A DNA stretch of 64,000 nt, taken from positions 12,400,001 to 12,464,000 of the forward strand of contig CM106586.1 of assembly GCA_048013815.1 (NCBI GenBank). Reading direction: 5' to 3'. Each line of letters starts with the position of its first letter. The stretch's first letter is position 1. This DNA is from Setoptus koraiensis (Eukaryota; Animalia; Arthropoda). Under the pieces are notes generated by a model, which had not been told where the DNA came from, ran no database searches, and was given only the letters and a program-made list of their open reading frames with translations. Positions 23,659 to 33,152 of the stretch are shown piece by piece. The translations under genes were made by a program, and so were the position numbers.

Positions 23659-23921
23659 GCAAGACAAGCATCATTAAACAGCTGATTGAGTCGCAGCAGG
23701 TATTTTTACCTGCGCAGCACGTCCGCCAGGACCTGAAACACAGTGACCAAGTGAATTTAAATTGGCTAAGCAAATTGAACTATCATGAACAGCTACTAGA
23801 GGAAACCATTGAGGCGCGTCGTTTGGCCTCGGCTCTGGCCAATCAGATGCAGGCCCATGCACAACTGCAACTACTGCTCGAACAACAACAGCGTTGTCAT
23901 CAACAGCAGCAGCAGCAACAA

Positions 23922-23952
<31 letters not shown>

Positions 23953-26900
23953 AACAGCAACAACAACCACAGCAACAACCGTCAAGGAAGTCCAGCACGT
24001 GCCAGCCAGTCTCGTCCAATACAGCACAACACAATAATAGCCAACAGCAACAACAAGTGCACCCGAAAATACTTATATCGACGTCGCAACCGCTCAAACA
24101 ATCGGCGCCCCCAACGAGGGGCGGCCAGCCTCAACCGCGCGCCTCCGTGGGTGCCATAACGGCACAAGAGCAGGTACGATTGGCAGCAATTGAACCGCAA
24201 ATATCCAGAGATGCCTTGGTGGCGTCTTCGCGCCATCAGCAACAACAACAATCCACAACAGATATCACAAACACCGACAGCACGGCGACAAATGCGGCGC
24301 GCGATTGTGCAGGTGAGTGCACAACCGGAAGTGAGCAAGATGCCTCGCCGTTGCTGTTGACAACAAACAGTCAGTCAATGACAAGTGCAGCAGCAGCGGC
24401 AGTAGACGAGACGACGAGCCAGCAGCAGCCAAAGCGATTTCTGGCCCCGTCCGCCGCGGAACAGATGGATGCCGGGCGCGTTGCGGCACCCGTCAGCGCG
24501 GGTCAGTCCAATTCGAGCGTCAACTCGACCCATGTTAGTACCCAACTCCATCCAAAGAGCAGCGCCAGCGCCCAACAATTGCCGCTGTCCAGCCAGGGGC
24601 GCTCCAGTAGCGGTACCGGAAGTAGCATTAGTGCCTCAATTAATCAATTTCGGCGCAAGTCGGCCATAACTGCGGGCGCCTCAAAACAGCCAACAGAGGG
24701 CGCAACCAAGACAAAATTGGGCGCCCTGCTCAGACAACACAGGCCGTCGTTGGTGCCCAACGGGGGCGGGGGCGGCGGCGGCGGGCCGGCGACGTCCAAT
24801 TCGGGCTCGTTCGGCAAGCTGGGCTCCAATTTGGGCTGCTCGGTGTTGCCCATGAACGGGCTGACGGCGCTACAGGGCAGCGGCAAGAACAATTTTCGGA
24901 TAAAGTCCAGCGAGGAGATTCAGGCGACAGGTAAGCAGCAGCAGCAGTTGCTGCTGAGCAACCAGGCGGCGAGCGGTCAGAGCCGCAGTCAGAGCGGCAA
25001 CAGCAACCTGTTGGATCAGCGGCGAGCTAGCAGTTTGTCGGCGGTGGCCATAGCTGCGTCGGCGGCCATTCACTCGCACCATTTGCATAGCCAGCAACAA
25101 CAACACAAGCAACAGCAGCAACAACAACAGCAACAACAACAACAATTGCTGCTGCTGCAACAACAGAAACAACAACAGGAAATGCTGGCCATGAACATAA
25201 GTCACCAGTTGAGTTTGTTGCAGCAACTGGAGCACCAGTTCGCCTCCATTTATCACAATAGGCAACTCAACAGTCGGTGCTTGTCGCGGGCCGCCACCCA
25301 ATTGGCCTCGAAAATCGATCATTTCATTGTCAATTTCATATCGCCCTTCAATCAGTGCCTGTTCGAGTTGAACATCATCGACATGCCGCTCATACACTCG
25401 TACCAATTTCCCACAAATACCCTGTTGGAGTGGTCGCTGTACAAGGGCAAGTCTCACCTGTTGACGGCCGACGCCTATTTGCTGGTGTTCGATCTCACCA
25501 GGCCGTCCACATTTCAATACATTAAGACAATTCGCGACAAGATATTTGAGTCGCGAAAAATGTCCACCGTGCCCATATATGTGATAGCCAACAAGGCCGA
25601 TTTGTGTCCGTCCCTGCAGCCCGCCATTAAGGCGCGCCAAACGCTGTCCATGCAACATTGTTATCAGTCGTCGTCGTCCAATAATTGTTATCACTCGTCG
25701 TCGTCGGCGACCGCCTCATCCTCAAATCACGCCACAGGCCACTACGGGGGCGCCACTGGCCACTACGGGGGCGCCACAAGCGGCGGTTATAGCAGCCACA
25801 ACAGCAAAACAGCTACGACGGGCCCCAAACTAAAGTCACGATGCAAACATGATACGCACAATTATTATCCGGCGCTGCACGGCACCGGCAAGGCCGCTCG
25901 CCGTAATTGTCAGCTGCGCGCCAACGCAAACAGCGGCCGGGCTCCGGGCCGCGTGACAGGTGCCTTACACAGCCTGAGCAACAACTTCGGCCATTATTTT
26001 TGTCACGTGCCCCTAGCGGTCATAACAAGACAGCACGGCACAGAGGGGCCCGGCTGCACATTTGCAAAGTCGGCCCAATTACAGCAGCGCCACGCGCGCG
26101 CCCATCGTCATCAATCTCCGAGAAAATCCCGTTCAACAACAACTACAAAATCATCATCTTTGTTTCATCATCAGTCGTCGCAACATCAACAGCAACAACA
26201 ACAACAACAGCACCACCACACAACCACCACAATTAGATGGTGGCGCCACCTGATTGGCCGACCAATGTCACCGGGAGCCCATTGCGACAATACGAGCGCC
26301 CATTGCAAGTCGAAACGATGCCATCATCACAGTCACACAATGTCGCCAGCCGATCATATGCTGTCGCTGTCGCCCTGCCAACAGCAGCCGTCGGCCAGCC
26401 CCACAGCGCCCCCAAGCAAGCTGTCCGTCAAACATCCAGAGCCGCGGCAGCAGCAAAACAACAACAACGCGCCCAGTGCTGACAACTGGTGGCGAGATTC
26501 ATTTAATAATTTGTTTAGATTGCGTCATTCGCGCAATTCATCTAACCACCACCAGAATGGGGCCGCACTTCACACGCCAACTAACGGCAACAACAACGGC
26601 GCAACCGGCAGCGCCTCTCACAACGGGGAGGCGCTCAGTTTGCGCATTAGCTCGGCAAGCAGGCGCTACGTGCTTAATTTATGCCGTCAGTTTAGGTGGC
26701 GCCAGCGGAGAGCTCGTGCGCGACACAATCACGACAGTTTCACCTGTCGTCAGTATGCTAATTTGTTTACGGCGGCCGCGGCAACAATAGCCACCAATCA
26801 GGCGGCGGCGCAAGCGGCCAGCGAGCGCTCTCAAACGCCCGTTGGCGGCTACGGGCCGGATTTGTTTGCCAGTCTGCTGGCGGGCAGCGCGACCAACTTG

Positions 26901-32106: not shown

Positions 32107-32143
<37 letters not shown>

Positions 32144-33152
32144 GCAACAACAGTTACGTAAGCCAGCAATAAACAAGCAAAATCTCACCAAGACACAATC
32201 GTCGTTGTGCGCCACCAAGGGCTCAATAGTTGCAGCACCAATAAATCAGGCCGCCACTGTTTGTGGCGACAAGCAACGCAGTCAATTGAGCCCCCTCTCC
32301 CAAGCTCATGCAACAACGACAACAACAACAAGTGTTGGCAAGACAGTTGTGTCGACGTCCGACGACCATCACGCGCACCGACAGCAAGCGACCAATGGCG
32401 ACAAGTCGCCGCCGGAAATGGTCGGTGGTGCGGCGGACAAACAACTGCAGTTGCGACGCAGACCTGTTGGCAAACAAAAGACGCTGGACAACAATTATGT
32501 AACCGCCACCAGAACCAGCTTGACCGATAATAAACTCGTGGATGGCACGCACAAACTCAAGACCAAATCACGTCTAGTTAAACAGATGTCTAGCGACAGC
32601 GCCGTACACACCACAAATAATAGAATGATGACAAAGTTAAAATTACGAACAAAATTATCTATCCAAGAGGAACCTCCAAACGAGTTGACCATGCCCGTCA
32701 GTGTTGGCGCCAGTGATAGATTTGTAGATAGAGCTGACATAGATAATAAGCTTACTAGCGGACAAAACAGCAGAATGTCAGTAACGCCGAAAAGCGACCC
32801 GTTTGTGGTGTCGCCAGGTGAGCCAATGGCCAGTGGTGATAATTCAGTGGTAATGTGTAAAAAGCAGCAATTGCAATCTTTCTCTTCAATGTCGTCCAAC
32901 ATAAATAGTGACAATGAAACCTCAGCGCAAAACAACATGTCGAAACAAGCTTGTCATACTAACAGTAACAACACTATTAGCATGATAACATCCTTGGACA
33001 ATGCCGGCGATAATGTAACAGAGGATTCGATCTCCATGGAGCCAACTGAGGCCAAATACAACAAGAGTGACACGAGAAAGGTCAAAAAGTCTGCCGGACA
33101 ACATCACAAAAACTTGCAACTCGAAGACCAAAAATCTTGCGCTCTCATGTGA
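23659..33152 (+). CDS. RASL10: RASL10-like small GTPase, giant second exon (spliced protein ~3178 aa)
   Basis: GKTSIIKQL at 23659. ELNIIDMP...FPTNTLLEW...AYLLVFDL...TFQYIKTIRDKI...PIYVIANKADL at 25311-25604 matches RASL10 DLQILDFP...FPVNTLQEW...AYILVYD...SFEYVKTIRQQI...[32 protein letters not shown]...ELI at 30693-30800 matches [21 protein letters not shown]...EL. C-terminal CALM CaaX at 33138-33149, TGA at 33150. One uninterrupted frame. Confidence 0.88.
25731..25778 (+). repeat. 21-bp in-frame tandem duplication encoding ATGHYGG x2
   Basis: gccacaggccactacgggggc / gccactggccactacgggggc. Confidence 0.85.
29060..29205 (+). repeat. Thr/Ala-rich coding repeat (ACAACAACAACTGCAGCG-type 18-mers) within the RASL10 insertion
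   Basis: Encodes TTTTTAAATT...; directly visible. Confidence 0.85.

Follow-up and report, generated by a model that had tools for sequence, protein, structure and literature searches.

A probable two-exon mite gene for a 3,178-residue RASL10 descendant with its G domain in three pieces

The window, meaning the whole stretch of 64,000 nucleotides that was analysed, lies on contig CM106586.1 of Setoptus koraiensis (GCA_048013815.1, positions 12,400,001 to 12,464,000 of the forward strand). By comparison of TIP49, the animal belongs to the acariform mites. The sole long open reading frame of the region is found on the plus strand at 23502..33152 (3,216 codons). Over this ORF, no internal stop codon occurs in frame, compared to 109 and 134 in the other plus-strand frames and 88-103 in the reverse frames. 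The part from 23659 to 33152 is a single exon with zero in-frame stops across 3,164 codons (107 and 134 in the other two plus-strand frames), which bears out the stop-free frame over 9.5 kb reported in the preliminary description. The exon was taken to start at 23659, as in that description, because the AG of the acceptor ends at 23658. Joined to a putative short upstream exon, it gives a predicted spliced product of 3,178 aa from two coding exons, about 16 times the usual size of a Ras-type switch protein. The features are given below, with amino acid positions in the spliced product.

1917..1959, plus strand: coding part of putative exon 1 (43 nt), with the Met, strand beta1 and the first part of the P-loop
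1960..23658, plus strand: intron 1 (21,699 nt), which interrupts the Gly codon of the P-loop G-K-T in phase 1
23659..33152, plus strand: coding sequence of exon 2 (3,164 codons plus stop; single open frame)
23659..23702, plus strand: rest of G1 (K-T-S) and helix alpha1, aa 15-29, by profile mapping, with secondary structure from the P0016 model
23703..25310, plus strand: insert 1, aa 30-565 (about 536 aa), in the alpha1-beta2 loop (switch I)
25311..25631, plus strand: G3/G4 block, aa 566-672, with beta2, beta3, the extended switch II, alpha2 to beta5 and N-K-A-D
25632..30665, plus strand: insert 2, aa 673-2350 (about 1,678 aa), between beta5/G4 and helix alpha4
27672-27770, plus strand: conserved island of insert 2, aa 1353-1385
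27891-27983, plus strand: conserved island of insert 2, aa 1426-1456
28794-28865, plus strand: conserved island of insert 2, aa 1727-1750
29637-29693, plus strand: conserved island of insert 2, aa 2008-2026
30540-30665, plus strand: conserved pre-G5 segment of insert 2, aa 2309-2350
30666..30857, plus strand: G5 block, aa 2351-2414, with helix alpha4, beta6, E-C-S-A-A and helix alpha5
30858..33137, plus strand: C-terminal tail, aa 2415-3174 (760 aa), S/A/Q/K/T-rich and of net positive charge
33138..33152, plus strand: CaaX box C-A-L-M (33138-33149) and stop codon

Exon 1 encodes M-H-Y-V-R-L-V-V-L-G-D-A-G-V plus the first base of a Gly codon and is followed directly 3′ by the donor G/GTGAGT, starting at 1960; the intron ends in an ATAG acceptor. 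Upstream of exon 2, no other match to a Ras beta1/P-loop pattern is followed by a GT donor of the right phase. As a control, the pattern was run over 319 kb, where only three loose matches occurred and the other two were not Ras-like. In the spliced N-terminus, aa 3-29 align to positions 2-28 of the family profile with an E value of 6e-7. Pattern, phase and profile score together point to this splice, and the start codon could lie further upstream. The preliminary description had placed G1 within the exon at 23659; K-T-S is indeed located there, but the first 14 residues and the beginning of the P-loop are assigned to the separate exon at 1917-1959. Intron 1 showed no codon periodicity (p 0.3-0.9), no ORF of at least 205 aa and no Rfam match, and an Rfam search of the window gave no match either. 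A YAG acceptor at the identical codon position (P-loop Gly, phase 1) was observed in 6/6 orthologous loci, 7/7 with the window. The sequence upstream of this acceptor is unrelated between species and contains stops in all six orthologous loci. Searching their upstream flanks (0.7-10 kb) with the exon 1 pattern yielded nothing; a large intron would probably run past the end of these contigs.

Three blocks of the product (aa 3-29, 578-672 and 2351-2414) align co-linearly with a profile built from ordinary RASL10B-like proteins, so that the G domain of about 190 aa is complete but in three pieces. The split matches to Ras (PF00071) that the preliminary description had anticipated were obtained: the G3/G4 block reaches 32 bits, above the cut-off of 21.6, with E 1e-7, and the G5 block, covering Pfam positions 124-160, is sub-threshold by itself (14.6 bits, E 0.026) but co-linear. 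With the family profile, the two blocks reach E values of 7e-31 and 9e-16, respectively. In a PDB search, the profile of full-length alignment A1 matched Di-Ras1 (2gf0) on the G5 block. The positions proposed earlier agree well with this map. The start of the G3/G4 block at 25311 is the same, with the present mapping reaching 25631 rather than 25604; the proposed G5 block (30693-30800) is contained in ours; CALM is found at 33138, followed by the stop; and the spacers estimated at ~530, ~1690 and ~780 aa measure about 536, 1,678 and 760 aa. The earlier account of their composition also holds, both spacers between G blocks being Q/S/A/G/T-rich. Insert 1 contains 20% Q and, at aa 54-97 (23775-23906), a conserved island that looks helical. 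Of the roughly 2,970 residues in the inserts, fewer than 150 in total belong to homopolymer runs of at least six, and tandem repeats are a small share of the ORF, every period being divisible by three. Pfam searches with the window pieces and the orthologues, and comparison of the full-length profile with the PDB, detected no domain other than Ras in the inserts. In an AlphaFold2 model of the ordinary relative P0016 (pTM 0.70), the insertion sites are loops. At the insert 2 site, ordinary relatives already carry a low-confidence stretch of about 30-40 aa, with pLDDT below 50 at residues 160-179 of this model. The C-terminal tail has a basic patch shortly before its end. A CaaX box with Met at position X predicts farnesylation, and the protein is accordingly predicted from its CALM end to be farnesylatable.

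Six deeply diverged orthologues (L001-L006) were found, five of them with complete ORFs of about 1,670-3,160 aa (the shortest, L005, about 1,670 aa) and one on a truncated contig. They share with the window the block order, the frame, the intron position and the two insertion points. Across the clade, insert 1 ranges from 330 to 975 aa, insert 2 from 1,017 to 1,766 aa and the protein from 1,670 to 3,178 aa, while the tail measures 61-288 aa in the orthologues versus 760 aa in the window. Five orthologues have no in-frame stops, compared to 48-235 off-frame. The one in-frame break met on checking the orthologue inserts, inside insert 2 of L006, is an ordinary, stop-rich GT..AG intron whose coding flanks share one frame, and the reading of the inserts as coding stands. 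The orthologues are 34-54% identical over their alignable parts. The three G blocks are 59-71% identical between window and orthologues and are by far the best conserved parts; the G3/G4 block is 60-68% identical to four orthologues, whereas the inserts barely align, and the G5 block is 59-68% identical. G-K-T-S, N-K-A-D, E-C-S-A and hydrophobic core positions are invariant or nearly so. Inside the inserts, more than 20 short motifs or islands are conserved. The window copy is the most diverged one and has lost several islands that are conserved in the other orthologues. All complete orthologues (5/5) end in CxxM (CSVM, CAIM, CRVM, CSIM), P0005 fitting the CxxM alignment consensus. A contig of a congener (L007, TIP49 98% identical) ends before the Ras gene and is outside this comparison. 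Matching of cluster look-alikes returned only generic Ras clusters with scores below 0.9.

As divergence between species was too high, dN/dS was set aside, and open-frame statistics, periodicity and within-species variants were used instead. Codon periodicity was observed for insert 1 (p 4e-12), insert 2 (p 7e-21) and the tail (p 8e-9), as well as for all five sub-segments of insert 2 (p at most 7e-4). Intron and downstream DNA showed none (p 0.1-0.9). Among within-species variants, five synonymous ones stand to three non-synonymous ones, and the indels measure 3 and 9 nt. An independent sequencing run (X1) spans 25001-31000 evenly in depth, and every indel in it preserves the frame; it behaves as DNA, since the intron is covered as fully as the ORF. 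Runs X2 and X3, which may be DNA or RNA, are patchy and probably one data set filed twice, and runs X7 and X8 match only simple repeats. Apparent joints in read contigs were considered as splice junctions and rejected: all lie at CAA/CAG repeats, none has GT..AG, and they also occur in X1. Judged from sequence, the inserts are translated, because the orthologues retain the architecture, the inserts hold conserved motifs and codon periodicity, and indels come in multiples of three. This multi-lineage evidence is a stronger argument for translation than a single open ORF, and, along with the frame-preserving polymorphism, it upholds the earlier proposal that translated inserts have enlarged a RASL10-type GTPase to about 3,180 aa.

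After the six giant forms, the best matches reach E values of 1e-18 to 1e-13 with 44-55% identity on the G3/G4 block and include 'ras-like protein family member 10B' of a beetle, snails and a fluke. Solved structures from other branches (RhebL1, Rap2A, RERG, GEM/RAD) score only E 1e-5 or weaker. The P-loop, as read across the predicted exon 1/exon 2 splice, is G-D-A-G-V-G-K-T with Ala at the position of Ras Gly12. Mouse RRP17 likewise has a non-glycine there (GARGVGK), and its switch II is lengthened by about 12-13 aa, has lost the DxxG glycine and carries a conserved proline (PMC2064797). In the window, switch II (D-M-P-L-I-H-S-Y-Q-F-P-T-N-T-L-L-E-W) aligns to the family consensus D-L-P-A-I-K-K-F-P-T-D-S-L-E-E-W, and the RASL10-type extended switch II lacking the DxxG glycine is present in the window and in 6/6 orthologues. 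G4 (A-N-K-A-D-L) and G5 (E-C-S-A-A) are kept in every orthologue that reaches them. Thus G1, G3, G4, G5 and the CaaX box of the claimed full set of RASL10 hallmarks are in place, but the switch I (G2) Thr is not. This residue (T36 of P0016) is nearly invariant (at least 90%) among ordinary relatives in alignment A2. The window has Ala in its place, P0001 and P0004 have Gln or Glu, and the remaining orthologues are not aligned at this point. The loss of the Thr falls exactly where insert 1 starts. Nor is the G domain compact and contiguous, as is usual in RASL10 proteins, being spread as three blocks over 3,178 aa. By best matches and profile scores, the mite clade is a divergent descendant of RASL10 (RRP17/RRP22) and not a canonical member, because it lacks this otherwise near-invariant Thr of switch I.

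Several other explanations have to be weighed. The T-poor composition of the region (17% T) and the CAA/CAG repeats that break short-read contigs might suggest an artefact, be it a mis-assembly, a gene fusion made by the assembly or an ORF that arose by chance in repetitive, T-poor DNA. However, the same DNA contains 107-134 stops when read off-frame, the independent DNA-like run reproduces the 6 kb tested and breaks only at repeats, and six independent assemblies of other species have the same gene layout. The artefact is refuted, and we assign it a negligible probability. It is unlikely, too, that the inserts are facultative, the main mRNA splicing out one or both in an exitron-like manner to give a protein of about 250-1,000 aa, with the giant form as a minor isoform. 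Ordinary relatives need just a short loop at both insertion sites, and the genuine intron inside insert 2 of L006 means that this region can be spliced. Yet that intron is stop-rich, unlike the inserts, of which selection holds about 2,200-2,700 codons open in seven lineages with conserved motifs; this requires the long form to be translated at a level relevant to fitness. Furthermore, none of the read contigs has a GT..AG joint, as joints appear only at CAA/CAG repeats and in X1 as well, and one contig of X2, which may be DNA or RNA, continues without a break from insert 1 across the G3/G4 block and on into insert 2.

A different possibility concerns the domain itself. The Ras blocks might be relics within a long, disordered, prenylated protein, that is, a pseudo-GTPase or dead domain that neither folds nor binds nucleotide. 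A loop hundreds of residues long stands in place of the switch I Thr, neither the DxxG glycine nor Gly12 is present, and a fold of 190 aa has to assemble across loops of 536 and 1,678 aa. With the Thr lost, the G domain could indeed no longer work as a nucleotide-dependent module. On the other hand, the blocks have stayed 59-71% identical between window and orthologues, whose inserts barely align, with G-K-T-S, N-K-A-D and E-C-S-A near-invariant, and the missing DxxG glycine and Gly12 are a family trait common to functional mammalian RRP17 (PMC2064797). We give this explanation little credence.

The locus holds a real gene, an undescribed variant of the RASL10 family, and in agreement with the preliminary description our searches, within the libraries covered, returned no described Ras protein of such form. 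We consider it likely that this is a two-exon mite gene for a 3,178-aa, farnesylatable RASL10 descendant with its G domain in three pieces, translated inserts and a phospho-scaffold role. Both inserts sit in loops between structural elements, and one of these loops is already flexible in ordinary relatives; the three blocks would therefore come together as a single Ras-like domain from whose surface the inserts protrude as disordered loops. Guanine nucleotide would presumably still be bound through G1, G4 and G5. GTP hydrolysis is probably poor, because the switch I Thr is lost and because, as in all RASL10 proteins, the DxxG glycine is absent and position 12 of the P-loop is a non-glycine. 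Hence the protein may be less a cycling switch than a nucleotide-loaded, membrane-anchored platform. Its kilo-residue loops bear conserved motifs of the basophilic-kinase type (R-R-K-S-S, R-K-L-S and R-S-A-S-I-T), which, together with amphipathic helices, might recruit partners under regulation by phosphorylation; for this phospho-scaffold function the motifs are the only indication. More doubtful, though possible, is the wider proposal that an 'exploded' G domain across the mite clade folds, binds nucleotide and acts as a farnesyl-anchored hub. Switch I would have given way to a disordered loop of hundreds of residues, the G4-alpha4 loop would have grown to 1,000-1,770 residues, and partner recruitment and control would have moved from the GTP cycle to phospho-regulated motifs in these loops, which are 3-9 times larger than the domain. 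If this were true, no small GTPase would be known to tolerate a more extreme insertion within its domain, and nature would have supplied a test of how a fold assembles around kilo-residue loops.

Small GTPases are the textbook case of a compact domain, and their control is thought to run via switch I and switch II. The mite clade keeps the nucleotide-binding motifs, but its domain is broken up by loops many times larger than the domain itself, one of which is inserted exactly at switch I, and this arrangement has been maintained through deep divergence. Should the domain fold and bind GTP, it would set a new bound on the disordered sequence that a small fold can hold internally and would offer a natural system for the co-translational assembly of discontinuous domains. 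It would also represent a Ras-family protein with control shifted to linear motifs in disordered loops. For annotation, the gene is a warning, since prediction software would be inclined to treat such inserts as introns, and this may be the reason why databases hold no named entry of such form.

Among known proteins, RASL10B (RRP17) and RASL10A (RRP22) are alike in the non-Gly position 12, the F-P-x-N/D-x-L-x-E-W switch II, N-K-x-D, E-C-S-A and the CaaX box. However, ordinary RASL10 members have a contiguous G domain and measure about 200-350 aa, or as much as about 690 aa where the N-terminus is extended, compared to 1,670-3,178 aa and two inserts in the mite clade. Mouse RRP17 binds guanine nucleotide and CAPS1, is prenylated and has a role in dense-core-vesicle secretion (PMC2064797). 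An arthropod 'DUF2967/Ras' cluster of about 1,378 aa is a look-alike in features and a lead only. Other large proteins of the Ras superfamily, namely Rab44/Rab45/CRACR2A and RGK, have extensions outside the G domain, RGK being devoid of the canonical switch I Thr. In all of these, the DUF2967/Ras cluster included, the extra sequence lies outside an uninterrupted G domain, whereas in the mite protein it lies mostly inside. Heterotrimeric G-alpha carries a folded helical domain of about 120 aa between alpha1 and switch I, which caps the nucleotide, and keeps the Thr. This is the same topological insertion site as in the mite protein (after alpha1, before beta2) and is compatible with a working Ras-like fold. 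In contrast, mite insert 1 spans 330-975 aa, is compositionally disordered and coincides with the loss of the switch I Thr. Translational GTPases of the EF-G/EF2 type possess the G' subdomain, folded and of about 90 aa, between G4 and G5 and on the other side of helix alpha4. The same G4-G5 interval holds mite insert 2, which exceeds 1,000 aa and has no detectable fold. In the proteomes of Plasmodium falciparum and Dictyostelium, in-frame, biased and fast-evolving low-complexity inserts occur in surface loops of conserved folds. The mite inserts differ from these in that they reach 3-9 times the size of the host domain, conserve their architecture across deep divergence and carry conserved linear motifs.

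The giant gene is a real feature of the window and represents a new form of RASL10-type Ras GTPase. The ORF listing gave a single ORF of 3,216 codons (23502..33152, +) without internal stops in its frame. There are 109 and 134 stops in the other two forward frames and 88-103 in those of the reverse strand, so that the T-poor composition (17% T) offers no explanation for the open frame. As anticipated in the preliminary description, HMMER matched Ras (PF00071) to two separate pieces of the ORF, 25200-25800, with a score that exceeds the gathering cut-off (E 1e-7), and 30600-30900 (E 0.026); no other Pfam family was matched anywhere in it. 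C-A-L-M forms the last four residues of the translation, directly before the stop codon. The earlier coordinates for the ORF, the blocks and CALM were all confirmed by the ORF listing, Pfam and translation.

The exon-2 frame stays open upstream of G-K-T-S to 23364, through sequence that shows no conservation. A YAG falls precisely on the first base of the G-K-(T)-S glycine codon in all seven loci, that of the window and those of the six orthologues from other species; upstream of it, the six orthologous loci carry unrelated sequence with in-frame stops within 50 codons. This pattern indicates a conserved phase-1 splice acceptor and places the start of exon 2 at 23659. A search of the upstream DNA for a Ras beta1/P-loop peptide whose codons stop one base short of a GT gave one match, M-H-Y-V-R-L-V-V-L-G-D-A-G-V plus G, followed by GTGAGT. 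The loose exon-1 pattern gave only three matches in 319 kb of control sequence, the other two not being Ras-like. Splicing 1959 to 23659 yields G-D-A-G-V-G-K-T-S and a stop-free protein of 3,178 aa.

Gene model of the giant Ras gene
1917-1959, +, exon 1 (coding part)
1960-23658, +, intron 1 (21.7 kb)
23659-33152, +, exon 2 (coding part)

Intron 1 contains no ORF of at least 205 aa, no codon periodicity and no Rfam match. In its last ~300 nt (23364-23658) A and C predominate and T is scarce. No polypyrimidine tract is seen in the 30 nt preceding the ATAG acceptor of the window; the orthologue acceptors are richer in pyrimidine.

The protein was compared with a 206-position HMM built from 39 ordinary full-length relatives and reaching from the P-loop to CaaX. 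Three segments of this profile map co-linearly on it, including the spliced N-terminus (E 6e-7).

Profile segments on the 3,178-aa protein
Profile positions 2-28: aa 3-29, E 6e-7
Profile positions 46-137: aa 578-672, E 7e-31
Profile positions 136-199: aa 2351-2414, E 9e-16

In the composite view G1, the extended switch II, N-K-A-D, E-C-S-A-A and helix alpha5 are retained. The G domain is complete but discontinuous, with canonical switch I as the sole absent element. The earlier claim that all RASL10 hallmarks are present holds for G1, extended switch II, N-K-A-D, E-C-S-A-A and the CaaX box, but not for the switch I Thr. Ordinary relatives read ...E-E-Y-K-P-T... at switch I, with Thr at least 90% conserved. 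At this site the giant forms carry F-E-P-Q/E (F-L-P-A in the window); insert 1 starts there, and on its far side a clade-specific I-x-H-F-x-x-N-F motif precedes beta2.

To locate the insertions, we used an AlphaFold2 model of the ordinary-sized relative P0016 (pTM 0.70). On this model insert 1 falls in the loop that joins alpha1 to beta2, and insert 2 in the interval from beta5/N-K-x-D to helix alpha4. Because P0016 itself has a low-confidence stretch of ~30-40 residues at the latter site (pLDDT < 50 at 160-179), insert 2 looks like a loop that was flexible to begin with and then expanded without restraint. By composition the loops are disorder-like: order-promoting residues make up 17-21% of them, compared with 44-45% of the G1 and G3/G4 blocks and 33% of G5. 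Of the 9,500 nt, only a few hundred lie in tandem repeats, every period being a multiple of three, and homopolymer runs of at least 6 residues account for < 150 residues in total.

With the G3/G4 block as query, an exhaustive HMMER search covering 1.84 billion representatives returned six long relatives of 1,407-3,163 aa (E 1e-41 or better), encoded on six different genomic contigs; the next scores belong to ordinary-sized Ras-like proteins (E 1e-18). In five of the loci (L001-L005), the G1, G3/G4 and G5 blocks and all detected islands, short conserved motifs inside the inserts, lie in one frame, which contains no stop versus 48-235 off-frame. Insert 1 spans ~395-975 aa and insert 2 ~1,017-1,766 aa in the orthologues, and the tail 61-288 aa compared with 760 aa in the window. 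The complete orthologues end in CSVM, CAIM, CRVM or CSIM. Identity between species in alignable parts is 34-54%, a deep divergence, and despite this E-INS-i alignment revealed > 20 islands within the inserts.

Examples of conserved islands
Directly after alpha1: H-E-x-x-L-E-x-x-I-E-x-K-R-L-A-S-L-L-A-S-Q
Inside inserts: R-R-K-S-S-x-x-A-L-W-x-T-L
Inside inserts: V-D-M-L-R-K-L-S-L-I-S
Inside inserts: P-S-I-R-I-x-x-S-G-S-S-L-S-L
Inside inserts: R-S-A-S-I-T-L-G

Base composition is strongly periodic by codon position in insert 1 (p 4e-12), insert 2 (p 7e-21) and the tail (p 8e-9), and in each fifth of insert 2 separately (p ≤ 7e-4). Four 5-kb intron segments and downstream DNA lack this periodicity (p 0.1-0.9). 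Over the 6 kb compared, another haplotype in the DNA-like sequencing run X1 carries a GGC (3 nt) insertion at 27248 and 7 + 2 = 9 inserted nt at 30121-30123, which preserve the frame and represent within-species length polymorphism of the disordered loop. Eight SNPs from two runs comprise 5 synonymous and 3 non-synonymous changes; this pattern of indels and SNPs points in the direction expected of coding sequence, with small numbers. The open frames of the orthologues, the islands, the periodicity and the polymorphism bear out the reading of a giant RASL10-type GTPase, and the evolutionary evidence that the inserts are translated is strong.

Stops in an orthologue's insert, which would speak against translation, were found only in L006, whose contig is truncated. 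Its ORF closes at 5666 and the same frame opens again at 6648; alignment with the orthologue protein P0002 breaks off at 5633 and restarts at 6819 with the frame unchanged. The intervening ~1.1-1.2 kb (5634-6818) contains many stops, starts with the consensus donor A-A-G-G|G-T-A-A-G-T and offers frame-preserving acceptors, beyond which no stop interrupts the frame before the contig ends. The gap is an ordinary intron in insert 2, absent at this site from the other six sequences and gained or lost in one lineage, and so does not refute translation of its flanks. It also serves as an example of how genuine introns appear in this gene.

Removal of the inserts by splicing was considered in the sequencing reads. 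The ORF is present in runs X1-X3. X1 contains a 9.9-kb intron piece equally well (0.97) at flat depth and therefore behaves as DNA; X4-X6 are DNA-like, one of them probably being the source sample. X2 and X3, which are RNA or amplified low-input DNA, cover 52% of the ORF versus 21% of the intron stretch at very uneven depth. A 1,090-nt X2 contig runs unbroken over 25178-26176, starting in the last part of insert 1, crossing the G3/G4 block and continuing 520 nt into insert 2, and a second joins the end of insert 2 to the G5 block (30261-30846). None of the joints in the assembled contigs of X1 (DNA-like) and X2/X3 (RNA or amplified DNA) had GT..AG ends. These joints lie at CAA/CAG repeats, also in X1, and were rejected as splicing; they neither support splicing nor prove its absence.

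The neighbourhood identifies the window as acariform mite DNA, judging from TIP49 identities of 82% to Fragariocoptes setiger (an eriophyoid gall mite) and 75% to Oppia nitens (an oribatid). The window TIP49 is 98% identical to that of the congener Logan contig L007.

Neighbouring genes
38556-39920, -, intronless TIP49/RuvBL1 gene, 454 aa, Pfam E 1.6e-162
40267-40884, +, Nse1 homologue adjoining TIP49/RuvBL1, the pair being syntenic in L007
L001:21610-27573, -, large Ig / Laminin-G gene
L004:15964-21588, -, large Ig / Laminin-G gene
L005:9024-14411, -, large Ig / Laminin-G gene

In these three loci the Ig / Laminin-G gene follows downstream of the giant Ras gene, in tail-to-tail orientation; it is missing from the window. 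The lineage of the window has thus lost a synteny that the other species keep, which fits the window copy being the outlier of the clade. A rhodopsin-family GPCR extends over two adjacent ORFs (43219-45581, -): 44202-45581 begins with a 277-aa N-terminal extension and then matches 7tm_1 positions 1-175, and 43219-44031 matches positions 190-260. The split suggests an intron or another insertion near intracellular loop 3.

Given the conservation of G1, G4 and G5, the protein probably still binds nucleotide. With Gly12, the DxxG glycine and the switch I Thr absent, it is unlikely to hydrolyse GTP fast or to have a classical switch I spring. Farnesylation and a membrane anchor are predicted from its CxxM end, and the islands resemble basophilic-kinase sites and amphipathic helices. 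In the most likely working model the protein would be a platform, loaded with nucleotide and tethered to the membrane, with loops that control partner binding. Condensate behaviour is possible, with no specific support.

The closest named proteins are annotated as 'ras-like protein family member 10B'. The RRP17 family is defined by a residue other than glycine at position 12 of the P-loop, by a switch II that is 12-13 aa longer and has lost the DxxG glycine, and by a CaaX box; RRP17 is reported to bind CAPS1 and to have a role in dense-core-vesicle secretion (PMC2064797). The mite protein shows these sequence traits, but lacks the switch I Thr and a contiguous G domain; we therefore regard it as descended from the RASL10 family but divergent, rather than as a canonical member. 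No named entry for the giant form was found in the sources searched, and, in agreement with the preliminary description, no described Ras-family protein with such intradomain inserts was found in the literature within the limits of the libraries searched. Both insertion sites do have precedents in other GTPases: for insert 1 in G-alpha, where a folded helical domain of ~100 aa is inserted after alpha1, and for insert 2 in EF-G, where the folded G' domain of ~100 aa lies between G4 and G5.
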